Source: Ascidiella aspersa (lineage: Eukaryota). From it: a stretch of 64,000 nt of DNA. Below are positions 43,701 to 60,436 of this stretch, in pieces (position 1 is the first letter of the stretch; each line of letters starts with the position of its first letter). The notes beneath the pieces were generated by a model. That model ran no database searches, was not told the origin of the DNA, and saw only the letters and a list, made by a program, of their open reading frames with translations. The position numbers and the translations under genes are program-made. Location: assembly GCA_963924565.1 (NCBI GenBank), contig OZ004614.1, forward strand, positions 7,626,001 to 7,690,000. The letters are read 5' to 3'.

Positions 43701-46700
43701 CTAGTGTGAACCAGCCTTTACGATTGTGGTACACCCACCATAACTCTAATTCAGAAATATTAAATGAGTAAATGCAAAATAATAATAAAACTGAACTATA
43801 CAATGAAACATATGTACACACATATACGACTCGTTCCCTTCTGAGCCTGCATAGCTCAGTTGGTAAAGCGACGGTCCCGGCTTGACGGGAGGTCGTGAGT
43901 TCGAACCTCACTCCAGGCTAGTTGTTTTTCTAGTCTGCTCTGCTTGCATCATTGATCGACAGACTGGGTGAGTCTGCAATGGCTTTTCGGTGTACTAAAA
44001 CTGAACTATATAACAAAAAAAAATAAAATTTTTCAAAATCATTTGTTTATACTATGAATTGTGGCTTATTTTGTTAATATTAGGGTAGAAATAATTTAAG
44101 CAAAAAAATATTAGGGTAGAATAATTTAAGTCATTTTGGTGCCTCCTTTCCCTGTTTGCTTTAACGTGCTTATTTTGCTTAATGGTTGAGGCAGCCCTAC
44201 TAAATCAACTATAGACAACAAGTTAAAATTGGAATCGTTTGGTATTACAGTGTACAGAGCAACATTGCAATTGCAACTAAACCATAAACTAAATAGAAAA
44301 TACAAATATTAAGCGAGCATATATACCGATTGAAATCGTTTTGGAATTTTGGGTGCAGCGCAACATGGAAATTGCATCCTAACCCTAAATTTAGATTGAA
44401 CCGCCATAACTCAATTAACAATAAGCGGGAATATACTGACTGGAAATTGTTTGGTCTTACAGGTTGCGGTGCGAGCCAGGCAGAAAAGGACCTGATCAAC
44501 AAGCTGCTCACCAACTACGAGCCGATGGTGCGACCCGCCTCAAGCTACAAAGAAGTGGTCAACGTGACTTTCTCACTGACTCTGCAGCAGATCGTAGACT
44601 TGGTGAGCGTTTACCTAAAACTTGATTTAATCCAACCTTGAACCGAATCCATAGTGTTGAATAGGCACATCTTAATGCAATTTTGATCCGATTGTGTGTT
44701 TTTTGTCTATTATTGTCATAATAAGCCAATGAGCGCCGGAAAAACGGTAGAGTATAGCAGGGCTTCTTAAACTTTTTTAGTTTTGTTCACCCCATAGCAT
44801 CTCTCTCCAGATTTCATTCACCCTTGTCTCATGATATGATAAAACTATCTCGTCTGTAAATCACAGCACAAAATGACTTACAGTAGGTTGTTTCGATTTT
44901 TGTTAGCTTGAACAACTCAAGCTAAGTTTTACCATTGCAAATCTACAATTTCTCGAGTCCAGAGATATAAAGCTACAAAAGCACTAAACACAGTCGCAAA
45001 GTTTAGAAAAACAATGGACTATCATCCATTTTTGACGGTTCACCCTTATTCACCCCTTTTGGTTGGTTCACCCCTACAAAAATTGTATTAGCACAACGAC
45101 GTTACAAAGCGGAGGTCTACAAAAATATGTGACGTAACTTAACATAAAGCATACCGGCCTAACAGTCTTCTTCCAAAACGCCCCGCTTGTTTGAGTAACT
45201 TTCAAAATTGCTAATCCATGTTAAACTGCCAATCCAGGTGTACCTAGTGGTTGTTGTTGTTCTGAATTTAGGTTACTATCAGATTTCTATGTCCCCCCGT
45301 AAAGTTAAAAATAGTATAGCTGCAAGAAACATGTGTTCACGTCTAGTTTTAACTTACAGGATGAAAAGAACCAGCTTCTGACCACCAGCATGTACATGGG
45401 ATGGGTAAGTGCAGTTGTGCTTTCGCAACTATTTGCTTTACAAGAAAATAATTAGAAACTTCTGCTCTTGAAGCCTATATGTAAACCCTTGGAATAGCTG
45501 AGCGAAATCCTTGCTATACAGATAGCCGATTAACTGGAAACTATTACCATAACGTATAGTCGACATCATGGGCGCATTAAACGCGTGTTGCACGGTCTAA
45601 AACTATTTTTTTGACTGATTGTCCTACATAAATGCAAAAAAACTTTCGCTCGCCCGAAGCTCTACGTCTTTGTAGAACGTTTTCGTTGTTTTGTTAGAAT
45701 ATTTTAAGCAGAACTGCCATTTTTACTTAATTTAACACAAAAAATATTGACGTTACGTGACGTTGATTGTTTTATGCCTTGCACAATTTATTATTTCAAA
45801 TCATCTTGGTAAATGCATTAATATCGAGTAACTTGCGAATTTTGCTCGTGTGCTCAAAGCGCCACTCTCCATAAAATTTGATGTTTGGTAAATTGAAACA
45901 CTCTTTATTTGGTGTATGTTGACAAAATTAGGTTGTGTATTCGCGCAAGAGTTCGACCAAAAAAATTTCATAAAGTTACTTGTATCATGACGTCAAGCTA
46001 TATTACACATGTGCATAGTGTACCCAACTTCTATCGAGGTCCAGTAGATGTTGGTGATCTGAATGAAAACTTACTTACGTGTGTTGTAAATCGCTCTCCA
46101 ATTCCATCTAGCGGCAAGATTAAACCTCGATTAATTTTTTAAGGGTTGGAATGACACGTATATGCACTGGGTACCAGCAGACTACGGCGGAATCAAGAAC
46201 ATTCGGATTCCAGCCCAAAAGCTGTGGAAACCGGATATCCTGATCTATAACAGGTATGAAGGGGAAAATGTCGTATTTTTAAATGAAGAACAGTGAACGT
46301 GGCCGTAAGCTAAAAACCTAAATTTCATGAGTGACACAAAGCAGTAAATAAACTTCAAGGCGCGCATTAAAATAAAAAAATGTGCCTCGTACATCCTATG
46401 TTAGTCTCAAAATTATACTGGGCCTTGAAAAAGTCTTCTATATACGCGTTCAGTGTAAACAGCGATAGGAGCCCTTCATTCGGCTTCTTCCTGGGCATTA
46501 TCTTTTTTAATATTACTTAAATTAAAAAACTAATTCGTATAATATATAATTTCCCCCAATAGGGAATAACAAGGGTTTAAATTGCTGTACATAAAAATAT
46601 AATAGAGTTTGTGATAAGATAAGGTGTCAATATGTACATTGTCGTCAACATTGTGCAAACTTATATTAGTTTTATTTCCGCGGATATTAATTTTGATCAT

Positions 46701-49700
46701 TTTCGCGAATAATAATTTTTGATCCCTTGGCGCGAATAATTGGGGTCTTGTCATAGCCGGCGTCCGCCTTAAGTACGATTCCGCATTTCGATAATTTCGC
46801 TTATTTCGTTCATTTCGGCCGCAAATTGTCAGCTGAATTGCCGCGCGGCGGTTAATAATATACTGGCATCTAATCGACCTTTGGGAAGGCTGGTTTAATG
46901 GGAACAATTTGCACAAGCTAAACGGCCACTTAGGTTTGGCAGCCGTCCAAGGGACCGGAAACTAGAAGGGGAGAATATGCCTTGCGTTTCTTTTAGGGAT
47001 CTCCGACGCTTGGCATTTTTTCCGATACAGATGCCCGAATTTTTCTGCACAAAGTACCGAGATCCGATACCATATGACGGCATGAACACCCTGAAAGAAG
47101 CGAAATAGATAAAATTTAAACGGTCAGTAGTCTTTTTTCTCTGGTTATTGGGCCCAAAGTTGGTTTAGCGTTAGGTCGTCTATAGTTGGTAACCTGTTAT
47201 TTTATTGATAAAATCACCATTAAAAGTAGAATCGCTACGTTTAGATCAAAAACGACGACTGAAATTCCTATATTAATTTAGTATCGGAGCGGCACCGATA
47301 CAACTGTAGCATCGGTATCGTGTATCGGCTCCGATCCAATATTATCAGGCATTCCTAGGTTATTTTACTCGTTCTACCAATTGGCGGCATCACCACCCTA
47401 AAACCAGCAAAATATATAAAATTTAAAAGTTGAATAGCATTTTTTTCCAGGTCATTGATTTGGTTTAGCGTTAAATCGTCCCGTTGTTAACCTACAATTA
47501 TATGGATAAATTCACATGTCAAAGTGGAATACTATGGAAAATATTCCTATATCAATTTGGCATCGATAATAACACTTAGCGGCTCCGGTCCTATATTATG
47601 GGTCATTCCTAGGTTATAATACTCGTCCTGGCAAAGTTGACTTGGGATCAGCCCTTACCCACACCTACTTTCCACCGATCTATTATGCATAGCAGGCTCG
47701 GGAAAGAGTCAGTCGTTTCCGCCCACTTTGTCCAACTTTGCGGGTTCGTTCCGCTCCAAGTTGCCCAAACTCTTCGCCCTTAACACGCGTTCATGAAAGT
47801 TTAATTGGCGTTTTGCCGTGAAAAGGCGTGCCCCGAGCCGCCTGCATAATTCACAGCCGACCCCCCTTTAGTACACGCGTGAGTATAGGCGATAATAATG
47901 TGCGTAGAAAACTTTGGCCTTGGGATTTTTTTTGCTACTTTGCTGTCATTGTAACGGGTTTTCCGGTGAATCATATTGTGTGCTAAACTATTTACACAAA
48001 TGTGTGTACAACTGTGGGAGCTTTGAAAGGCGTACTGATAAACAATTCCGATGTTCATATATCAATAGTATTCTCGGAGATTTTTTAACCCCTGATAGAT
48101 TGACTGATTTAGGTTAGCCCATAGAATACTCATGGTCACCTAAATCAATTGTTTTTTCAGGCAAATGTCACAGAAAAAACGTCAGTCATTTAACATGTTT
48201 ATTTTGTTGCGTCTACCTCTGTTATTCCTGTCGTTTCTTGCATATTCTTTCTAAATCATTCAACATTTGACCTAGGTCGTTTAACCATCAGTAAAAAGTG
48301 TTTTCTGATTTGGTCTGGCCTACAGCAATTCCAAGACTATACCGTTTTTAAAACATTTTATTATACCCAATGCTCTTTCATTGCCAAAACACTCAACGAA
48401 AAAATTTGATTTCTAATTAGTTTATGATTCAGAATCATATACCACAATTACAATAAAAAAACAAAAAAATAATTTTTAAGCCTTTTTGCCATACCAAATG
48501 CCATCGTTCTGTGTCACTCCAAAAGAAAAAAACACTCCAAAAGAAAAACATGTTTTTAATTCATTTCTGGTTAGTTTATGATTCAGGAGCACATATTGCA
48601 CTTAGAGGAATCAGGTGACACTGTATTAAGACAAATTGTATTGAATTCTCGACAAGCCTTCGCACAACCGTGCTCCATCATTTCAAAGTACAAAACTGGT
48701 TAAATTGGCAAATGCGACCATTTACAAATATACTGCAATTACAATGCAAGAAAATCATACGATTTAACATAAAAACAAACGATGCTTCGCAGCGCTGTGG
48801 ACACGTTTGATCAGATGCTGCAAACCAACCTAATCGTCCACCACCACGGGCTGGTCGAATGGCTTCCTCCCGGTCTCTTCAAGACGACCTGTGACGTCGA
48901 CATAAAGTACTTTCCCTTCGACGAGCAGCGATGCCACATCAAGTTCGGCACCTGGACCTACCACGGCGGACTGGTGAGTGTGATTTTTAAGTGCAGGTTC
49001 ACAGGCACCTGTCTAGTTTAACCGGTCAGGAAAAACAGGACCACTTATTGACCCATTTTCAGTGGAAATGTCCGAAACTTGACATTTTCCGAATATTTTT
49101 TAGAATATTTTTACATTTTATTTCCGATACCGAATATAAATATTTTACATTTTATTTCCGATACCGAATTTTTTTACAATTTTTTTGTGTATATCTTGTT
49201 TCTATTCCGATATATTTTGCCAGTTAAAAGGCAACTATATATCTTGGTCACCGGTCATGAATACCGGACCGGCTATCCCTATGGCAATTAGTTCGCCTCT
49301 TATTGATCCTTTTTAAGTAGATATGTCTGATACTTGACACTTTAATCCGATACCTGTAATTGACATTTTGGACAAAAGCTGTCGCAATCCGATACCAAAT
49401 TACGTCATTGCTATGCATAGAACAATCGAAATAGATAAAAATGAAAAGTCAATTTTTCCTACTGATTAGGCCAAAAGTTGCTTTAACGTTAAGAAGTCTT
49501 GTTATCTCCAGTTGCTAGCCTACTTTTTGTTGTTAAAAAGATTGCCTTTTCAAATTAAGTATAATCCCCGCATTCATGGATGAAATCCTTGCATTGATTT
49601 GGTATCCTGTCGGCGCCGATACCACCGTAATATCGGATGAGTACCGATAATGCCACTTGGCATCTGGCATTGGCACCGATCCGATGTTATTGGATATCCC

Positions 49701-52700
49701 TAATTTTAAGTTTAAAAGCTATTTAGATTACCGGATATCGTTGTTCACCTGTTTTAGAATTGGGGAAATCTGTAGAAGGCTTGTTTCCGATAGTATAGCG
49801 TTTGTGCAAAATTTAGGTAACTGTGCTTTTCTGTCGGTTTTGATAGTCACGGGGACAAGGTAAAAATCGTAGCTTTAAGCGTAAGCGGCGATTTAGACAA
49901 GCCCTTTTGTTTAGAATGTTAAAAGACATGCTTAACTTCTCATATTGTGCTTATGTGCTTTTAGGTTGATCTGGTGGTAGCGCCTAACGCCGAAGCGGCC
50001 CTGGACAGCTACACTCCAAGTGGAGAATGGGACCTCCTTTGTAAGCATCTTGTGGTTTGCTATTTGAAATGCAATATGCAATACTTTTTTGTTGCTCTTT
50101 AGTATTTTTTTTCTCTTCTGTTCCATGCTTATACCAGTTAAATAACAATGTACTAACAGTGCGGTATAATGAAAACGCCAAAAAGTGTAACAAAAAGCCA
50201 GGAAAATATTTAAATGTGATTCATGCCATGACAAAAAATAAAAAAATTGCATCGCAAAGCACCAAAAGTTACTCGAGACAATATATCAAATGTGATCCAA
50301 AACCCTAAAGACAGATCTCACTTAAAAAGTAATTTAAATAATTATTTATTGTCACGTGTAACTTTTAAATGAAGTTCCGTTGAATTCTCCGTCGAAATAA
50401 CCGTGTAATATAGGTTTTCAGAGAAAAAGTGAACTAAAAATAAAATGTTGGGCCAGTAAACTACTAAATATCCTATTAGAGCCAAAAATTATGCCCTATT
50501 TAATGTGGCAAATATTCTTTAGACTTTCCTGTCTTAGTCAAAGTCAGTCATTAAGAAGTTCCAGTCCACATTAATAAATAGTAGTCCGCACTAAAACTTC
50601 TTATTGCGGACTAGAACCTGTTAATAAATAACTTTGACTAAAACAACCAAGTCTAAAGAATGTTTGCTGCCATTTGAATCCATTGTCGTGATATACGTGT
50701 AAGGGTTAGGAGATATCTTCATATTTTACACATCAGTTTGTCACTATTTAATGTGGTATGCGGTCAAAACAGTAAAACAGCCCCTTTTTCGCGCCACGTG
50801 TGCAGCGATGCGCGGCAAGCGGACGGCGGTGACGTACGAATGTTGCGATCACCCGTTCGTCGACGTCACCTTCACGGTTCACATGAGGAGGAGAACGCTC
50901 TTCTACGGATTCAACCTGATCCTTCCCTGCGTCCTCGTCTGCTCCCTTACCATCCTGGTCTTTCTCCTCCCGGCTGACTCCGGGGAGCGGATCACTCTGG
51001 GTGAGAGTCCTCTTTTGTTTTCTTTTTCTTTTTGGTTTGTTGCATCGCGGTGTTAGCTTTATTTTTGACACAACTCGATGCGGCTTGAAACATATGCTGT
51101 TGGTTCTGGTATTATAAGTGTTGTAATGACTTAAGTGAGTAAGTTGACTTAAGTGCACTTAAGTCACCTTTTTAAAATGACTTTACTTGACTTAAGTCTT
51201 TCGGACAAATGACTTGACTCGACTTTGACCTGGGTTAAAATTAAGCGTTTTCATTCAGAATTTTTTCAAAAATTGAGTTATTTATCTTAATTTGCGCATA
51301 TAAAACAATTTGCTTACTATATGTTGCATTTATATTATTTTTTACTTGAGTTATTGCTAACAATCGGACGAGTTTACCAATTTCATTAGTTTAAAGTTTT
51401 ATTTTCAAGACAAAAGGACTTGACTTGAAGTTGACTTGCTCTAATTAAGACTTGACTTGAACTAGTCTTGGGCAACCGATGACTTGGACTGGGGCTTGAG
51501 TTGTTATTTATTCGAAAACATACTTAACGGACTTAAATTAATTAATGAATGACTTGACTTGGACTTAAGTCATTTCAAAATGACTTGTTCACAGCACTGG
51601 GTATTACTATTACACTGTAGCGGTGGATCTTTCCCATAATAAGTCGTGTCAGAGAATTTTACTAGGTTTGTGTCCAATTTTGAAGAAAGACCCCTCAAAA
51701 TCGATCTCAATAAATTAAACCACGTGGACTACTGCACTCATCAGCGACCCAGCCAATAAAATGGCATCCCAAAAAACACTGGTATAACATAACCGAAAAA
51801 ACGTTTACCAATAAAATCATTAAATAAACGACACTGTATGATGTTTTTTTTAGTGCATGTGTATTCAGATCGGACTCGCGGATTTCCTGGATATACTGTG
51901 CTATACTCTCCACGTGTGACTTGCATTATTGATACATATCTTGTTGCTTGTACAAGCGAACTACACGCTTTCGCCCTCGACCACTTAGCGCCTTAGCGAG
52001 TTCAAACCGGGCGGACACGAATTATCCGCATGTGTCGCTGGCGCGCTACATTTAAAATAAGGGACTAAAAATATGTACCGGATGGTGTCGCTAAAGATTT
52101 TTTTTTAATTTTCAACCGTTTTTCTTGGTGCCTTTCAACCTGTTGTCGTATTCGTGAGATTTAAGCTTTTAAACGTGAATAATTTCGTTTACTATAGGAC
52201 ATAAAAAGTAAATGGCAATCTGAAATATGATGTCTGACTACATTATGGTGATTTGTTGTTATTGCGAATACAACCCTTTAACACGATCGGGTGCGAAAAA
52301 AAACTACTCCGTTCATACTGAAGGTCTGAAAAATCCACCGTTTTTGGCACGTATATCCAAATGACAAAAACGCCGATTTTGGGTTGTTGGCCAAGAAATA
52401 AAGCCTGCGTTTTAACTCTTCTCATCCATAATGACAATAAGCAATGATAGTTCTGTAAAATGCATATTTAAACTTAGCGACGGGGTTTTAGGTTGTGGTA
52501 AATCTTAATTCTTTGTTCAAAATCTTAATTTCCTTATTCTTTTAGAAAATGGTACTGAAATACATATTGGCCGAAATCACTGTGTGTTGCATTATTTCAA
52601 ATTTGGAGAGCTGTATACTTATGTTATGTATAGCATATCTTATGTCCCAATTCATTTCAAAAGAAAAGCCCCGATTTTAGACAATATCCTCTTCTGTCCA

Positions 52701-55700
52701 TTTGCCTCCCAAGCTGTCATTGAATGAGATAGATGAGACAATCAATTTAGAATAAGCTTACAAAATATTCTACACTGCATTTGAGTCCTTCAACCCAGTT
52801 TAAAAATACTTATGTAGAGCTAACCTATTTCGCCCCCATACACAGGCATCACGGTGCTTCTCGCCTTGGTCGTCTTCCTACAACTTGTCGCCGACAACCT
52901 GCCTCCGACTGACGTCATACCTTTGCTCGGTAGGGTGCTCCGCTGTGATTGTTCGCTCACGAATGGGCGGGGCCGGATAAAAATTTGGGCGAAAACCGCA
53001 CAAATGAGGTTTACGCTGGCGGTAGTGAGCGTTTTTTTTTATCCGGGCCTGTACCTTTCCGAGGCTTTTAGTCCTGGTAAATGGCTGTCTTTAATTTCGG
53101 GGAATGCTGCATGTTCCATAGTCTTGGTGTTTATTAACAAATTAACTTAATGTGGCTTCTGTGGTGTTGTGTTCTTTTGAAATTTTGTTTTTGTTTTTCT
53201 GTTTGCATTGAAAACCATATGTATTCTGGGCAAGTGAAACAGTTACAATAAGAAACAAGCATTTAAACCTCGCCGTTTGTCAGTCAAAAATCCAGGTATT
53301 CATTTCGATGAAAGCAAAGTTATTGAGTAAGCATAAATGTAACATAAAAATATCATACCAATTTGTTACAAACTTCTTGTCATTTTTGTTCTTAAGTCAC
53401 TGCTTTTTAAAAAATTATTAGTCTTTTAGGCAAAATGGGTAACTAAAGTCTATCAGACAAAAGACTTGACCTGGACTTAAGTCATTAGGACAAACGACCT
53501 GACAAAGTTGGGTCTTTTCATTCAATTAGTGGTAAAATTTGGTTAGTTTTACTTCAGTATCTGCTCGTAAAACTATTTGCTCTCTATACAGGTGTTTCGT
53601 TTCTGTTATTTGTGAATCAAAACTTTCTGTTTGGTAAATTATCATTTTATTTTGATGCAAATGAATTGTCTTGCTATGGACTAGAACTTGACTTACCATT
53701 TTGATACAAATGACCTGACTTGAACTAAACTTAATTTGCAAATGACCTGACTAGGACTAAACTTAATTTGCAAATGACCTAACTAGGACTAAACTTAATT
53801 TGCAAATGACCTGACTAGGACTAAACTTAATTTGCAAATGACCTGACTAGGACTAAACTTAATTTGCAAATGACCTGACTAGGACTAAACTTAATTTACA
53901 AATGACCCGACTAGGACTCGAGAGTCATTTCAAAATGACTTGGTTACAACGCTGGAAGGTAGCACTTAAGGCGTGGCCTTTGGAGTACCGGCATGTAGTC
54001 AGTCGCCCAACTGTCTTCCGAGCATACAACCCTTGAAACCGGTCACAGTTTCAACACAGAAGCACTGGTAACCTGTGTACATCGTCTTTCCTCCGAACAG
54101 GTATAACCCTCGTGCTGGCGATCGTTGTCTTTATGGGTCCCGTTGTTGAAGTGATACCCCATTCCACTGTGGAGTCCCTCGTCTGTAAGCAAACGAGTGT
54201 AACGGGGTTTTCTGCTAACCGCAGCTGATATCTGGCTTTAATCAGTGATTTTTGCCGGGTCGAGATGCCTTGGTACGTTTTAACAGAACAGTCGGTTGCG
54301 ACGCCGTACTTCGAAAGCTTGTGTTTGAAATACTGACACACTGACATCGCAGACTTGTCGTATTTTTAGTGTTGCAACAACATGCTAGGTTTGGCTTTCA
54401 AGGACTATCAAAGCCGTTGCAGAAACTGGTCAATTTGTGCAAACGTTTCGAATATATTATTCACGAACGTTAGACGATTTACTTCGAACGTTTACACAAT
54501 ATTAACTTATTTGTGTATACTGCTGTGAATGTTCCTTCTATATATTAAACTTTCTTACTAAAATAAACTAAAATTAACAAAGCTAGGATGAATCTCGGTA
54601 TATTTTGGTTCGTTAGACATTCTTGTGATATGAGGTGATGATAGTAATAAACCTTAAATGTCATTTAGTTTTAAATAACTGCTTTTCCCTACTATCCACC
54701 AGTAATAGCATTTACACTATATGTCGCTATATTACCAACAAGCGTTATACTGTAAAAAATAAACTGCCTATTGATCAATATAAAGAGCGTTGTTTTAAAC
54801 TAACCTTAGAACCAAAGCATTTCAAAACAACCCAGGCACTGTATATTTTAGATGCAACCTTAAAATCAGCCAAGTTGCAATTGCCTTATTTAAACCCAGA
54901 TTGAAAGTATACTGAAGTCTAAAAATAACCTCAAATATAACCAGAAATATTTGTTTGTATAAAAAAATATATCATTTCTGCTTTGTGATTTACTAACAAT
55001 TGTCCAAAATCTAACTCGTTGTTAACAGACAGTTTTATTTAGTTTATTCACATTAACTGAAGATGATAGAAGCTCTTATCGAAACGTGTTAACCAAGATT
55101 ATTTTGATCTACTCGACCTTTTTGGCTTTGCAATTTATTATCAAGCTACATTACAGATCGTGAATAGTGTACCCAAGTTTTATTTACCATTGGGGGTATC
55201 GTATGTTGCATGTTGCGTTGCATGGTGTTGCCATTTTATTTGAAAAAAAAAATGTCGTCTTGACGGTCTTCTGCATGCGTTGTACACACGGAGTGTGTAT
55301 GAAATCTCTTTTTTCTGCCCATTAATCGAATTGCGTTGGCGTCCAGGCAAGTACTTCGCGTGCAGCATAGTCATGGTGACGTCATCGGTCATATGCACGG
55401 TGATTTCCCTTAACTTTCACCACACGACGTCGGCGACCACCAACGAGATGCCTGCATCGGTAAGTGACGCTTGGCGGGGCGTTTGTTTAAAGAAGTGGGG
55501 TTATCTTAATTCTTAACTGTTACGGCGAAACGCCGCATCCGTATATTGTGAAACAAAGTTAATTGCAGAAAATCTTACTCGGTCGTGTCTATTCTAATAA
55601 CAAGTGCTTTGCAACCAAGTAAATCGTTTTATTGCACATAACTGAGTTATTCCTGTTAATGACGTTTAGTTAACCGTAATTCTCATGTAGGTTCTCATAC

Positions 55701-58700
55701 AGTAATTCTATAATTCTATTGGTAATTTTTACATATTCTACGAGCCATATCATTGAAAGAACAACAACAGGTCTACCTGTGCGCGAAAAGGCACTCGGAA
55801 CAGATAATAAGCGAAAAGATATACATTGGAATAGTTTAAGATGTTAGAAAATGTTCAAAGAATGTGCATCTCTTTAACCAGTTAAAAAATAAATTTATTT
55901 TGAACGCAAAGTTTTAGGCTGGATTTATTACAGTATTTTAGTTTTTTTAGGCTTTATAAATTTTAATCATTTGTCAACACGTGTGATTGAAATCCACCAA
56001 ACACGTGTGATTGAAAATCCATTCAATTTATGCGTAGAAACAATAAATGAATCACGAAGGCTTCTGATCGGACTTTGATATTAATTCTAAGTAGTCTGAA
56101 GAAAATGCTAAATAAATTACTCATGTAAACAGTGTGAAAAACAATTTAAGGGTTAAAAAATGCATTGCGCTTTGCAAATTAAATTATTCTTGTCAACAAC
56201 CTTCAATTTTTTTTTCAAAGAAACAGGATTGCAGCGCGGAAACAAATCGCTTTTTCCCCAATTTGACTACAGCGTTTTTTTGACATAACACCGAAAACGA
56301 GCTTTTCATAGGCGATCAAGTTCGTCCGAATACTATTTTATGTTACGTGTAGATTCGTCTGATCTTTCTCGAATGGCTTCCAAAGTTGCTCCGTATGAAG
56401 AGGCCAGGGGAGAACAGCTTTAGACGAAAGTTCCTGGACGGAACCGAGCCGGAACTTCTGGCTGGAAATGGGGCAGAAACACCCCTGATCAGGGCACGTA
56501 TATCAAATGTCTGCTATATTGTTTACCGACACAGAAATGTTTAATATCCAAAACTTTGCTTACAATTTACACTTTGGACCACAATGGTAAGAGGTTTTAG
56601 TTAGACGAAGTAGAAATATCAAAGTCCATAAAGAATTATAGGTAACTTTTTTAACGTTTCGAATATGTCTTTATTCAGTTTCGACTTCAACATCTAAATT
56701 TAGTTTTGGCAAATTTAAATTTAGATTTTGGATTGCTGCTAAATTGAGCAGGAGGCATTGCTGTAAACGTCTGGGGGTAATTTTTTTTTTATAAAAATGT
56801 AAGTCGCCTGTAGTTAACGATTTGCCATGTTGTGAAAAGTGATAAGTCGTTTGAGTTACTTATCATCTCGGCATAGAATTAAATCGAGTTTATTGTGTGC
56901 ATTACTTTGACTTTCTTTTCGAATTTCACAGATCGGCGATCGGCTGGCTAACAAAGGAAACGACTGCACCACAAATCTGTGCGACGCTAACCAGTAAGTT
57001 CAAATTAAAGCACACCAACACACCTTAAAATATGAGGTTGTCTAAAATAGTTTAGCACATGGCGTTACTTAAAACAGTTGGCACTTAGTTACAGTTGCAC
57101 TACTGGCATGAAATCAAGGTGAAGGATGTAGCCTAATGGTTTGGGATTTTTATTTTGATGGGCCAAGGGTAAAAAATATAAAATGAATAATAAAAACTTG
57201 GGCACAACACCTTTCTATGTAGTTATCGAATTAAATATTTTGCTGTGCTGTTTAACCTCGGGACATTGGTTGTTTCATAAAGGTTCCAGGTGCGCCGAAG
57301 GCAAAAAAAAGATCAAATTCTCAAAAATAAAACCTATTTTTATTATTTACTTTCTCCTTTGCCTTAGCTCATTGAGCATACTACAGCACTTTCAAGATAA
57401 TGCAATCATGAGACCGTACAAAAAACTTTCAATAAATAAATAAATAAAAACTTGCAATAAACGTAATTTATTTGCTAACTGTTTTGGCTTAGGTCATTAT
57501 ACAATACAGTCATGATAAAGTTACCATGAGACCCACGTAAGAAAAAACTTGCAAGAAATTAAAGGTGAATACTGGTATACAGAACATATTTTCTGCTTGC
57601 TCTATATCAGGGGTTCTTAACCTTTTTTGTATGTTTCACCCTCTGAACAAAAATGAATATCAAATTTACCCCCAATATATAAAGTGGTGCTCATTTATTA
57701 AAAAAACGAAAGTAACAAATTACATCAGTTATAGTCAGTGTGACGGCTTCCTTTGCTTTTTGGCAACGAGTTAAATTGCAATATCTGGGAAATTAGTGAT
57801 AATGCACAACGAATTTAAGATTTAACATGAAGTCGGTTTCGTGCTTTATATTTAATAGTTAGTAATGCAGAGAAGCCGCTTCGCAAAAGTTAGTTAAAGA
57901 AAATGGAACAAAAAATATACATATCCTTGGATTTACCCCCTAGAACGAGTAAATTTACCCCCTGGGATAAATTTACCCCAGGTTAAGAAAGCTGCTCTAT
58001 ATAGTTGCGTCCTGAGGTAAATGGGTAACGAAACACCGCACTATCGTATAATATCTAAATCTCAAACATCAACAACCATTTTCGCAATAAAAACTGATGT
58101 TTTTATTTTGGCATCACGTCTCTCAAACTGGCGTCAAAAAATAGTTCTAACAAATAAAACTCGAAATACAGTTGCTCACAAGGGAATGGCGGGCGGCTTA
58201 ACATGTCTTTAAAATCACATGTGTTTATATCAGGAATGGGCAACCTACGGCTCGCGGGACAGATTTGGCCCGCCAACGCAAATCATGCAGTCCGCGGCCT
58301 ATTTAACAAACTGGGCACGAGGCCATTCCTGATATTTATTTGGCTGTTTTAACTACCGGTACCTAAAATCTTTTTTTCCGCTTTGCAAATCTTGTTCCTC
58401 CATCGGGTGTAAATTACAATTTACAAAATATACTATAGTTTTAACCCTGATTAACAGTCGTTGCGGTTGTTATAACAAGATGCGTAAAGTATACACATTT
58501 AAATTAAACCAACCCGAAGTGACCTCTCTAAGTTTGGTTTCGGCCCGCGACTAGAAAAAATGTTGCCCACCCCTGGTTTATACTGTAATGTGGTTGATCA
58601 GGGAAATGAACAAGATCCTTGAGGGGCTGACTTTCATCACCCAGCGAATGCACAATGACGATGAAGATGAAAAGAGCGCCCTCGAGTGGAGATTTGCCGC

Positions 58701-60436
58701 CACAGTCTTGGACAGGTGAGGCAATCCGCTCGGGCCGTTTAGGGTGCTTATTATTGCACTAAGAATAATTTGATGAATAAAAACAGCCTGCTGTGAGTGA
58801 AGTGTTAAACGCAGGGCTGCGGAGTCGGGTGAAATTACCCCGAGTCCGACTCCAGCCAAAAAAATAAACCCGAATCCGAGTCCCAAGTCCGACTCCAGTC
58901 AAACGTGCGCTATTTCGTCGAGTCCCGAGTCCGGTTCTGACTCTACAAACTGTATTCCGTACTAAATTCGGTATATTCAACAACCCATTTAAAAAGAGGT
59001 GTAATACAACTCATCTACTCGCAATACATGGTGTGAAAATATCCACCATATGCTATTACGCCTTGTACAATTTACAGTTGGCGGTCATATCAGTTTCAAA
59101 ATTTAGTACTGCGCGTGCTCACGTCTAAATTTCTTTGGTAGTTTTACGTGGTCTCACTCGAGTCCCGAGTCCAACTCCGACTCCACAGCCGTGGTTATAC
59201 GCATTGTATATATATTTTCGCAAGGTTGTAAGTTCATTGCCCTGACGAAGATTGCCTCAACAGATCATCCAAACGTTGGCACATTTGGGAAAAAATATTT
59301 GTCGGACAAACAATACAATGCCTGGCAACAATAACAGTATAATCACTCGTTTAAGTTATAAGCATTAAATGCGTTTTTGATAAAAATAAATGTAACATAC
59401 TTTCTCATGTTTGTACAACTGCGATAAATGAGTCGTAAAACTTAGCACCAAAGATGCCTGAAGCCAGATTGGTATACTAGTTTTTGTCCTAAGCCTATTT
59501 AACAGGAAATATCAACAGTGAAAAAACCCGTATAAAATATTGGCCTTAGAGTTGACGCTTTCTCGAGATACATCTGGTTGTTTTGGAGCAGTGGTTCTCA
59601 AACTTTTTTGCTTGCGACACACTAAAAATTCTGAAACATTTTACGGCACACTTTTAACAGAACAACAATAGAGTCATTTTACAATCGCCCTTAAAACACG
59701 ACAAACTATATGTAGGCCTATATGTATCAATATTAATAATTTGTAATGGATAGTGCGTAGTTAAGTCTTAAATGCTTGCGTGTATGCCCATTGGAAATAC
59801 AAATAACTTATTTTTCTAAATTACAAAAAGTTTCGCGGCAAACTTAACAATCTCTCGAGGCACACTATTGTGCCGCGGCAGACAGTTTGGGAATCACTGC
59901 TTTGGAGTATTGCGTTCGAATCTTGTTCCCAGTTGGAATTGCTTTGAAACATACGCTATCGACAAAACCACGGTTGCATTCATTAAAGCTTTCTCAACAT
60001 ATGAAGTCCGGAACTTCATTAGTGAAAATTACACGTGTTACCGATGCCTTTCAAATATTTGTCAACAAGTTCTACCTGTGTTGTAAACAAGTCATTTTTT
60101 TCTTTATTTTTACCCCAGTCATTCGTCCACAAGACTTAAATCAAGTCAATTCATTTGTTCAAAAGACTTAAGGCAACTCAAGCCATTTTCCTCAAAAGAA
60201 TTAAGTCAAGTCATTTGAAAACAGTGAGTTAAGTTAAATCATTGACTTAAGTCATTACAACACTGGATCTTACCTGTTCAAAATATTCTAACCCTAAAAT
60301 AAAATACGTGTAAGACTAACGGATCGAGAACTGCAATCCCAGGTTCTGCGTCTGGTTCTTCGTCATCTACTTCGTGGTGTCTACCATGTTCACACTTGGA
60401 CTCGCCCCGGGAATCCTACTGCCCTACCAGAGCTAG
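31708..60436 (+). CDS. CHRNA7: Nicotinic acetylcholine receptor alpha subunit, alpha7-like (about 472 aa, 13 coding exons)
   Basis: join(31708..31771,44463..44602,45360..45404,46144..46253,48793..48973,49965..50040,50806..51000,52846..52929,55347..55459,56353..56493,56932..56993,58602..58715,60343..60436) = 1419 nt in frame. Contains a signal peptide, Cys-loop [15 protein letters not shown], vicinal YECC (alpha subunit), M1-M4 and LPADSGE. Exon sizes 140/45/110/195 match vertebrate alpha7. Exact orthology is not provable by eye. Confidence 0.9.
32339..32584. mobile_element. hAT MITE family B, copy 1
   Basis: CAGTGCTTCTTA...TAAGAAACACTG; TSD GTGTACAG/GTATACAG; homologous to 44758 and 63714. 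Confidence 0.85.
32593..33230 (+). mobile_element. Decayed hAT (Buster/Charlie-like) element
   Basis: TIR-like CATGGGTTCTCAAACTGGGG directly after the previous TSD. Traces of hAT dimerisation-domain-like peptides (LSYATTW, LRLAI). Boundaries uncertain. Confidence 0.35.
33500..33800 (-). mobile_element. Possible decayed L2/Crack-like LINE fragment
   Basis: Frameshifted peptides loosely resemble the Y...L.YC...W...IR.I...HTNP.. pattern; weak. Confidence 0.25.
37719..38035. mobile_element. hAT MITE
   Basis: Perfect TIR CAGGGGTTCTTAAAC; perfect TSD GTTTATTG. Confidence 0.9.
39010..39240 (+). mobile_element. Possible decayed LINE (CR1/Jockey-like) ORF2 3' fragment
   Basis: AMYSSLI..PHLK..IRR and IPTLS..KRKLLFL loosely resemble the post-RT region of CR1-group LINEs. 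Confidence 0.3.
40912..41151. mobile_element. hAT MITE
   Basis: CAGTGGTTC...GAACCACTG; perfect TSD CTTTAGAC. Confidence 0.88.
41937..42207. mobile_element. hAT MITE (diverged)
   Basis: CAGGGTTTCTTAACC...GGTTTAAAACCTCTG; subterminal GGGGTGCG. Confidence 0.65.
43503..43717. mobile_element. PIF/Harbinger-type MITE
   Basis: Perfect TIR of more than 20 bp, AGGCTGGTTCACACTAGACGCG; TTA TSD on both sides; central palindrome AAGTTGAAATATTTCAACTT. Confidence 0.88.
43801..43995 (+). mobile_element. tRNA-derived SINE-like element / pseudo-tRNA
   Basis: A box TAGCTCAGTTGG and B box GTTCGAACC in a tRNA-like fold (43844-43919) with an aberrant anticodon arm. Flanked by the 15-bp direct repeat TAAAACTGAACTATA. 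Confidence 0.7.
44463..44602 (+). CDS. CHRNA7: nAChR exon 2
   Basis: [24 protein letters not shown]...[13 protein letters not shown]; 140 nt, AG/GT bounded. Confidence 0.92.
44758..45085. mobile_element. hAT MITE family B, copy 2 (right end truncated)
   Basis: High identity to 32339-32540. Confidence 0.75.
45360..45404 (+). CDS. CHRNA7: nAChR exon 3 (loop D)
   Basis: [15 protein letters not shown]; 45 nt; CAG| and |GTAAGT boundaries. Confidence 0.92.
46144..46253 (+). CDS. CHRNA7: nAChR exon 4 (loop A)
   Basis: [36 protein letters not shown]; 110 nt. Confidence 0.93.
48793..48973 (+). CDS. CHRNA7: nAChR exon 5 (loop E, Cys-loop, loop B)
   Basis: AVDTFD...[38 protein letters not shown]; donor |GTGAGT. 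Confidence 0.95.
49320..49701. repeat. CCGATAC-motif MITE remnant (related copies at about 47020-47360 and 47410-47610)
   Basis: Shared blocks CGAAATAGATAAAA, GGCCAAAAGTT and CCGATAC, and a GATATCCCTA-like end. Confidence 0.55.
49965..50040 (+). CDS. CHRNA7: nAChR exon 6 (loop F)
   Basis: [25 protein letters not shown]; TTTTAG| and |GTAAGC boundaries. Confidence 0.9.
50502..50674. repeat. Imperfect palindrome (MITE-like) in nAChR intron 6
   Basis: Nested pairs GGCAAATATTCTTTAGACTT/AAGTCTAAAGAATGTTTGCT, TAGTCAAAGT/ACTTTGACTA and TAGTCCGCA/TGCGGACTA. Confidence 0.65.
50806..51000 (+). CDS. CHRNA7: nAChR exon 7 (loop C, M1, start of M2)
   Basis: [22 protein letters not shown]...[15 protein letters not shown]...[12 protein letters not shown]; 195 nt. 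Confidence 0.95.
51116..51599. mobile_element. hAT MITE with GACTT subterminal repeats
   Basis: TSD GGTATTAT/GGTATTAC; many GACTT units. Related fragments near 30985-31130, 53390-53955, 60085-60265 and 62400-62700. Confidence 0.8.
52846..52929 (+). CDS. CHRNA7: nAChR exon 8a (M2 and M2-M3 loop)
   Basis: [28 protein letters not shown]; 84 nt, phase 1-1. Confidence 0.92.
53707..53918. repeat. 32-bp tandem repeat, about 6.6 copies, inside a GACTT-family MITE
   Basis: CAAATGACCTGACTAGGACTAAACTTAATTTG at 53707, 53739, 53771, 53803, 53835, 53867 and partially at 53899. Confidence 0.95.
54101..54184 (+). CDS. CHRNA7: nAChR alternative exon 8b (duplicated M2 exon, probably mutually exclusive with 8a)
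   Basis: CTTTCCTCCGAACAG| and |GTAAGC boundaries; 84 nt, phase 1-1, no stop. [28 protein letters not shown] aligns without gaps to exon 8a. Confidence 0.75.
54680..55175 (+). mobile_element. Decayed Penelope-like 3' fragment (GIY-YIG remnant plus pLTR with hammerhead)
   Basis: TSNSIYTIC...DQ..ERCFK resembles GIY-YIG N-terminal motifs (weak, frameshifted). It is followed by the hammerhead and the terminus shared with the 21304 element. Confidence 0.45.
55052..55093 (+). ncRNA. Minimal hammerhead motif, intact core boxes but GUG triplet
   Basis: TTAA-CTGAAGA-T-GATAG-AAGCTC-TTATC-GAAA-CGTG-TTAA. Confidence 0.65.
55347..55459 (+). CDS. CHRNA7: nAChR exon 9 (M3)
   Basis: [25 protein letters not shown]...EMPAS; donor |GTAAGT. 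Confidence 0.93.
56353..56493 (+). CDS. CHRNA7: nAChR exon 10 (MX helix, intracellular loop)
   Basis: [19 protein letters not shown]...; the 3' boundary is inferred from a GC donor, AGG|GCACGT. Confidence 0.8.
56932..56993 (+). CDS. CHRNA7: nAChR exon 11 (intracellular loop)
   Basis: TTTCACAG| [20 protein letters not shown] |GTAAGT; its phase-2 end fits exon 12. Confidence 0.65.
57608..57994. mobile_element. hAT MITE
   Basis: CAGGGGTTCTTAACC...GGTTAAGAAAGCTG; perfect TSD CTCTATAT. Confidence 0.85.
58231..58575. mobile_element. hAT MITE
   Basis: CAGGAATGGGCAAC...GTTGCCCACCCCTG; TSD GTTTATAT/GTTTATAC. Confidence 0.82.
58602..58715 (+). CDS. CHRNA7: nAChR exon 12 (MA helix)
   Basis: [38 protein letters not shown]; donor |GTGAGG. 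Confidence 0.9.
58812..59193. mobile_element. hAT MITE with GAGTC/GACTC repeats
   Basis: CAGGGCTGCGGAGTCGG...CCGACTCCACAGCCGTG; TSD GTTAAACG/GTTATACG. Confidence 0.8.
59238..59281 (+). ncRNA. Minimal hammerhead motif, degenerate (CAAA for GAAA)
   Basis: TGCC-CTGACGA-A-GAT...ATC-CAAA-CGTT-GGCA. Confidence 0.5.
59589..59899. mobile_element. hAT MITE family A, copy 3
   Basis: TIRs as above; TSD TTTTGGAG/CTTTGGAG. Confidence 0.85.
60343..60436 (+). CDS. CHRNA7: nAChR exon 13 (M4, stop)
   Basis: [30 protein letters not shown]; TAG at 60434-60436. Confidence 0.9.

Follow-up and report, generated by a model that had tools for sequence, protein, structure and literature searches.

We describe a duplicated pore exon in a nicotinic acetylcholine receptor (nAChR) gene of the ascidian Ascidiella aspersa. 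The DNA analysed is a stretch of 64,000 nucleotides (nt) of contig OZ004614.1 (positions 7,626,001 to 7,690,000), hereafter the window, on whose own numbering all coordinates are given. Judged by its exons, it holds an intact plus-strand orthologue of the 'alpha-7-like' nAChR gene of another ascidian, Ciona intestinalis. In this gene, the short exon for residues 4' to 31' of the second membrane-spanning segment (M2) and for the linker between M2 and M3 is present twice and, on the sequences compared here, the second copy (8b) is a real, conserved duplicate of the canonical one (8a) and is very likely used as an alternative to it. Taken as a whole, the evidence is probably best explained by a tandem duplication in a tunicate ancestor, after which both copies were kept as alternative M2 exons.

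Two M2 exons and the constraint on them

Both exons lie between exon 7 (50806-51000) and exon 9 (55347-55459) and are separated by an intron of 1171 nt:

52846-52929, plus strand, 84 nt: exon 8a, canonical M2 (4'-31') and M2-M3 linker; flanks acacag/GC...CTCG/gtaggg; Pfam PF02932, E-value 1e-3; 28/28 residues identical to Ciona 8a
54101-54184, plus strand, 84 nt: exon 8b, diverged duplicate of the M2 exon; flanks cgaacag/GT...GTCT/gtaagc; 19/28 residues identical to Ciona 8b

The two share their phase, since each opens with the second and third positions of a Gly codon begun by the final G of exon 7 (51000), and each ends with a base that opens a codon finished by GC at 55347-55348 in exon 9. 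This last codon reads Cys after 8b (T+GC) and Gly after 8a (G+GC), a difference absent from the preliminary description of this DNA. That description had proposed, from the letters alone, a second exon at 54101..54184 with good splice sites and with the length and phase of 8a, whose peptide would be homologous to that of 8a without gaps. The sequence bears out both proposals: these are adjacent homologous exons of equal length and phase, each with its own AG and GT sites, and their peptides, which read as described, are identical at 12/28 residues. The BLOSUM62 score of this alignment is 53, against 22 for the runner-up among the 27,538 stop-free 28-residue windows in the six frames of the 64-kb stretch, so that the likeness of 8a and 8b cannot be put down to chance. 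Nor is 8b an assembly slip, because contigs from two DNA runs cover both exons.

At the DNA level the two exons are identical at 37/84 positions only, and these positions are very unevenly distributed over the codon: 14/28 at the first, 21/28 at the second and 2/28 at the third position (second versus third, Fisher p = 2.9e-7). Neutral drift would have erased all three positions alike, and the pattern therefore marks an old duplicate under protein-level constraint. The preliminary description had argued along the same line, namely that diverged DNA with frame and length kept speaks for selection and not for a dead recent copy, and the codon counts sustain that argument. Base composition further sets 8b apart from its surroundings: its G+C fraction is 0.52, that of the other exons 0.48-0.60 and that of the three surrounding introns 0.35-0.38.

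Exons 8a and 8b recur, in this order, in the gene of Ciona intestinalis. The check on related species that had been proposed thus turned out in favour of 8b, which is present and in frame in Ciona, where it encodes GITLVLSLLVFMVPIVEVIPHSPITSSV followed by Cys, the same junction residue as after 8b in the window. With 68% identity to its Ciona counterpart, 8b falls within the 60-100% range of the gene's other coding exons and is thus conserved like an ordinary coding exon, although it has evolved faster than 8a (19/28 versus 28/28 residues identical to Ciona). Signs of selection on both copies, and the presence of both in another species, accordingly come from the codon pattern and from the Ciona proteins. 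Polymorphism offers too few sites for a test of selection (one variant in the 84 nt of 8b versus four in 186 nt of flanking intron). The sole 8b variant in the DNA runs, at 54142 (G>A, with A in both runs and G in the assembly), replaces Val18' by Ile, a conservative change that yields the Ciona residue. In 8a the two runs show no variant, and the intron directly upstream shows 17 differences in ~150 nt.

Derived residues of 8b and the pore

We compared both 8b exons, that of the window and that of Ciona, with an alignment of 24 alpha7-like proteins from tunicates, arthropods, nematodes, annelids, amphioxus and vertebrates. The 8b exons have in common the following states:

8': Val in both 8b exons; Leu in 23/24 homologues
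17': Pro in both 8b exons; Pro in 0/24 homologues
19': Val in both 8b exons; Ala or Ser in 23/24 homologues
24'-25': His-Ser in both 8b exons; mostly Pro/Ala then Thr in homologues
M2-M3 linker proline position: Ser in both 8b exons; Pro in 23/24 homologues
junction with exon 9: Cys in both 8b exons; Gly in 19/24 homologues

Since these derived states are common to the two 8b exons, the exons are orthologous, the duplication is older than the split between the genera, and their derived sequence has been kept since. Thr6', Leu9', Val13', Phe14', Glu20' and Pro23' are retained in both. The two 8b exons differ from each other at 16', which is Val in Ciona and Gly in the window, and in the linker, which reads HSPITSSV in Ciona and HSTVESLV here.

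The proline of the M2-M3 linker has a role in the gating of Cys-loop receptors. In chick alpha7, Leu254 and Leu255 (that is, 16' and 17') reportedly govern Ca2+ permeability (Bertrand et al. 1993). By analogy with these systems, the 8b form of the receptor should depart from the 8a form in gating, in Ca2+ permeability or in both, or it might not conduct at all. The Ciona 8a-only and 8b-only proteins, modelled with AlphaFold2 on the same 25-row alignment, are equal in fold and confidence, with an M2 helix at 266/267-289, which weakly suggests that 8b poses no obvious problem for the fold, such models being driven by the alignment.

The tandem duplication that we consider probable would have proceeded as follows. 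The exon for M2 (4'-31') and the M2-M3 linker would have been duplicated in a tunicate ancestor, before Ascidiella and Ciona diverged, and both copies would have been retained in frame with splice-competent sites. Exon 8a would have stayed canonical and almost frozen, while 8b would have evolved faster towards a derived, conserved state, with Val8', Pro17', Val19', His24'-Ser25', no linker proline and the junction Cys. The spliceosome would place either 8a or 8b between exons 7 and 9, yielding two subunits with a common ligand-binding domain, M1, selectivity ring of -1' Glu (from exon 7), M3 and M4. What would set these subunits apart is the outer half of the pore, together with the M2-M3 gating linker; as in chick alpha7, changes at 16'/17' would alter Ca2+ permeability, and changes in the linker would alter gating. 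From here we propose, tentatively and with somewhat less than even confidence, that in a chordate alpha7-like receptor the choice of M2 exon switches the outer pore and the gating linker, by a system that arose independently of the insect one, and that the channel made with 8b works, has a Ca2+ permeability or gating of its own and serves particular ascidian tissues, for instance neurons or ciliated gill cells.

A different outcome of the same duplication is that 8b is a conserved alternative exon whose product does not conduct, or is dominant-negative or regulatory, and tunes the surface expression or gating of 8a-type receptors, in the manner of truncated or duplicated alpha7 variants elsewhere. 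Pro17' (0/24 homologues), the missing linker proline (present in 23/24), Val in place of Leu at 8', the lack of a Pfam match and the much faster evolution of 8b than of 8a all fit such a product. However, the six residues retained in 8b in both genera go beyond what a spoiler subunit would need, and the AlphaFold2 model of the 8b form has a normal M2 helix. We consider a non-conducting or regulatory 8b product unlikely.

Predicted exon use in Ciona and in the window

Exon use was read from the Ciona proteins, a 90% cluster of 13 sequences with more in three sister clusters, in the stretch cut between ...SGERITL and KYFACS.... Isoforms with 8a only (P0271, P0274, P0276, P0281, and P0280, the product of the cloned cDNA NP_001265890/BAJ65320) stand beside isoforms with 8b only (P0272, P0273, P0277, P0282) in two RefSeq annotation releases (RefSeq isoforms X1-X8), so that Gnomon models exist for transcripts with either exon. 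The cloned Ciona cDNA is of the 8a type only. The claim of the preliminary description that one gene makes two pores is thus upheld as far as the conservation of 8b in Ciona and its 8b-only RefSeq models are concerned, but strict exclusion is not, given that models with both exons or with neither exist as well. As for the function of the Ciona gene, the A7/8-1 subunit is reported, by secondary citation of Jokura et al. (2020), to mediate ciliary arrest in Ciona gill slits; the Ciona alpha-7-like gene may encode this A7/8-1. A second alternative event was also apparent among the Ciona models (P0271, P0273, P0275, P0276-P0278), where a two-residue insertion in the cytoplasmic loop (...PLMVVR.. 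versus ..PLMVAG...) pairs freely with the exon 8 choices.

Several observations weigh against two alternative M2 exons in one gene. The exon-by-exon Pfam scan gave no match for 8b at E <= 1. A search for Ascidiella aspersa RNA runs found none, the only runs being two of DNA type from one study. The Ciona RefSeq isoforms are computed Gnomon models, and they include tandem isoforms with both exons (P0152, P0275, P0278, P0279) and isoforms with neither (P0154-P0156). The annotations of Clavelina and Styela list no isoform of the 8b type, a statement that does not extend to their genomes. Finally, by its sequence the 8b product may not conduct, two near-invariant features of the family being broken in it (Pro17' and the missing linker proline).

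The first two of these points, together with the atypical sequence of 8b and its one non-synonymous variant where 8a has none, could mean that 8b is a dead, no longer spliced duplicate in decay, a pseudo-exon, and that the Ciona 8b isoforms are annotation artefacts. Such decay is hard to reconcile with a frame, a length, two splice sites and 19/28 residues kept between genera whose other exons of this gene are 60-100% identical, with an identity to 8a of 75% at the second codon position versus 7% at the third, or with an exon-like base composition; the only variant, moreover, is the conservative V18'I, which matches Ciona. We therefore regard a dead 8b as very improbable.

The tandem and exon-less Ciona isoforms raise another question, namely whether 8a and 8b are independent cassette exons, with all four combinations made and with both-exon and neither-exon transcripts abundant, functional or not. 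Both lengths are multiples of 3 (84 nt each) and every combination stays in frame, and the 1171-nt intron is too long for steric exclusion. Consequently, neither frame-dependent decay nor steric hindrance enforces exclusion, and the exclusion of double inclusion and double skipping may be only partial. An inverted-repeat scan revealed no convincing nested docking/selector RNA pairing, which also suits cassette exons; most of the repeats that it detected are arms of an intronic repeat family, and two pairs that bracket 8a-8b (I6 and I16) were rejected as chance pairs that are not nested. On the other hand, two or zero M2 segments would give the wrong membrane topology for the architecture of a Cys-loop receptor, Gnomon freely combines observed junctions and rare mis-splicing could yield such models, and exclusive use is the rule for nearly all exons duplicated in tandem (PMC1919356). 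Independent use of the two exons thus seems to us rather unlikely.

The intron downstream of 8a holds a predicted structure that could bias a choice between the two exons:

52926-53064, plus strand: predicted RNA stem-loop, inverted repeat I12; minimum free energy -57.9 kcal/mol, z -2.88, 0/200 shuffles as stable

It starts 4 nt before the 8a donor, so that in the predicted fold the 5' splice site is paired with 53051-53064; its inner arms are 52970-52983 and 53036-53049, and it lies within a GC-rich island. On this modelled fold we take it as a candidate splice-choice element. GC-rich islands (0.45-0.57) at 52900-53050 and 53900-54330 flank both exons in introns that are otherwise at 0.35-0.38, and such GC-rich flanks are typical of conserved intronic regulators of alternative exons.

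The introns are also repeat-laden. A tandem array with a 32-nt unit (6.6 copies, 96% matches) occupies 53707-53918 between 8a and 8b, and very high-copy repeats lie at ~51.03-51.68, 53.82-53.98 and 54.96-55.29 kb, where the DNA runs show word depths of 10^4-10^5. Apparent joints in contigs from these runs were considered as splice junctions and rejected, since they fall within high-copy intronic repeats (51.0-51.7, 53.8-53.95 and 55.0-55.3 kb).

Host gene, origin and related systems

The host gene was defined by exon-by-exon Pfam scans and by tblastn with orthologous proteins, all searches having single exons or database proteins as queries. In addition to 8a and 8b, the following exons were located:

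44463..44602, plus strand: N-terminal exon of the ligand-binding domain (LBD); tblastn with the Ciona orthologue, 62% identity; AG/GT flanks; upstream signal-peptide exon not located
45360..45404, plus strand: 45-nt exon of 15 residues, 15/15 identical to Ciona; preceded by AG and followed by GTAAGT
46144..46253, plus strand: 110-nt LBD exon; 66% identity to Ciona; Pfam PF02931, E-value 1.4e-10; splice flanks present
48793..48973, plus strand: LBD exon with the Cys-loop; Pfam PF02931, E-value 4e-19; 77% identity to Ciona
49965..50040, plus strand: 76-nt LBD exon; tblastn with the Ciona orthologue; splice flanks
50806..51000, plus strand: exon 7, 195 nt, loop C with YECC, M1 and the start of M2 (-1' Glu to 3'); PF02932, E-value 3e-7; 88% identity to Ciona
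55347..55459, plus strand: exon 9, 113 nt, M3; PF02932, E-value 2e-4; 89% identity to Ciona
56353..56496, plus strand: first part of the cytoplasmic-loop exon (3' end not fixed); 60% identity to Ciona; acceptor
58602..58715, plus strand: MA-helix exon preceding M4; 77% identity to Ciona; AG/GT flanks
60343..60424, plus strand: M4 exon (3' end not fixed); 75% identity to Ciona; acceptor

The exons together show the hallmarks of an nAChR: the domains Neur_chan_LBD (PF02931) and Neur_chan_memb (PF02932), a Cys-loop (C-x13-C) in the exon at 48793-48973 and the vicinal cysteines (YxCC, here YECC) in exon 7. A profile-free search with exon 7 led to the full-length Clavelina lepadiformis protein P0012, whose closest relatives, with P0012 as query, were alpha-7-like proteins of Ciona intestinalis, Clavelina and Styela clava; 'alpha-7-like' is the name that the related proteins carry in their sources. 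The window gene is nearest to that of Ciona (exon identities of 60-100%), and alpha7 is the closest class, the Ciona orthologue P0274 matching alpha7 chains in PDB at E 1e-124 and alpha3 at 1e-106. tblastn with the orthologues revealed no second copy in the window of any exon other than 8.

To place the duplication, we searched the Ascidiella aspersa genome (308.6 Mb), in which 8b matches itself only and 8a matches itself and one paralogue. Of the paralogous loci, those at C8:19.15 Mb, C7:12.58 Mb and C4:30.1 Mb each show just one M2 exon within 20 kb, and two others gave no M2 match at the threshold used. A word-based search of annotated proteins with the Ciona 8b region (residues 266-305) retrieved the Ciona cluster only, and of 63 pattern matches to 8b in metagenome and metatranscriptome contigs none (0) was confirmed.

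The M2 exon of vertebrate alpha7 encodes 29 residues. Both ascidian copies encode 28, the length typical of tunicate alpha7-like genes (a paralogue in the same genome has 29), and window 8b is closest to Ciona 8b, followed by tunicate 8a exons. On this length and these neighbours, the duplication appears tunicate-specific, and an origin independent of and convergent with that of insect alpha6 is probable, which makes plausible the possible convergence with insects raised in the preliminary description. Exon duplication within such genes was also seen elsewhere: the gene models P0004, P0005 and P0006, from other animals, have two tandem copies in series of the exon for loop C and M1, equivalent to exon 7. 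This suggests that the duplication of alternative exons is widespread elsewhere in alpha7-like genes and that gene-prediction programs often join the copies wrongly.

A textbook example of alternative pore exons is insect alpha6, on which spinosad acts and whose exon 8 encodes M2. Exons 8a, 8b and 8c of this gene (Dalpha6) are tandem duplicates, conserved for ~300 million years and used exclusively (PMC1919356). The ascidian gene resembles it in being related to alpha7, in the tandem duplication of a short pore exon with copies of equal length and phase, and in that the copies have diverged in DNA and are conserved in protein, one more so than the other. In insects, however, exclusive use was demonstrated by reverse-transcription PCR, whereas usage in ascidians is known from Ciona gene models alone; all insect copies keep a canonical M2, while ascidian 8b is strongly derived (Pro17', no linker proline); and a duplicate of the insect exon-3 type was not seen in the window gene by tblastn.

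Among solved structures, the Ciona orthologue is matched best by vertebrate CHRNA7 (in structures such as 7KOO; E 1e-124), with which it shares the Cys-loop, the YxCC of loop C and the ring of -1' Glu. Around M1-M3, human CHRNA7 is laid out as here, with a 195-nt exon 7 followed by a short M2 exon. Vertebrate CHRNA7 has a single exon 8 of 87 nt, whereas the M2 exons of the tunicate gene are of 84 nt and two in number.

In the literature searched, we found no paper describing an alternative pore exon in a chordate nicotinic receptor. The value of the finding is tempered by the fact that the principle is known from insects and that the Ciona RefSeq models already contain the exon. A second M2 exon conserved in the sister group of vertebrates would be a natural experiment on positions 16'/17', and thereby on Ca2+ permeability, and on the M2-M3 proline, and thereby on the coupling of binding to gating. 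This experiment is open to test, Ciona being a laboratory model in which gill ciliary arrest is reported, by secondary citation, as a read-out of an alpha7-related receptor.

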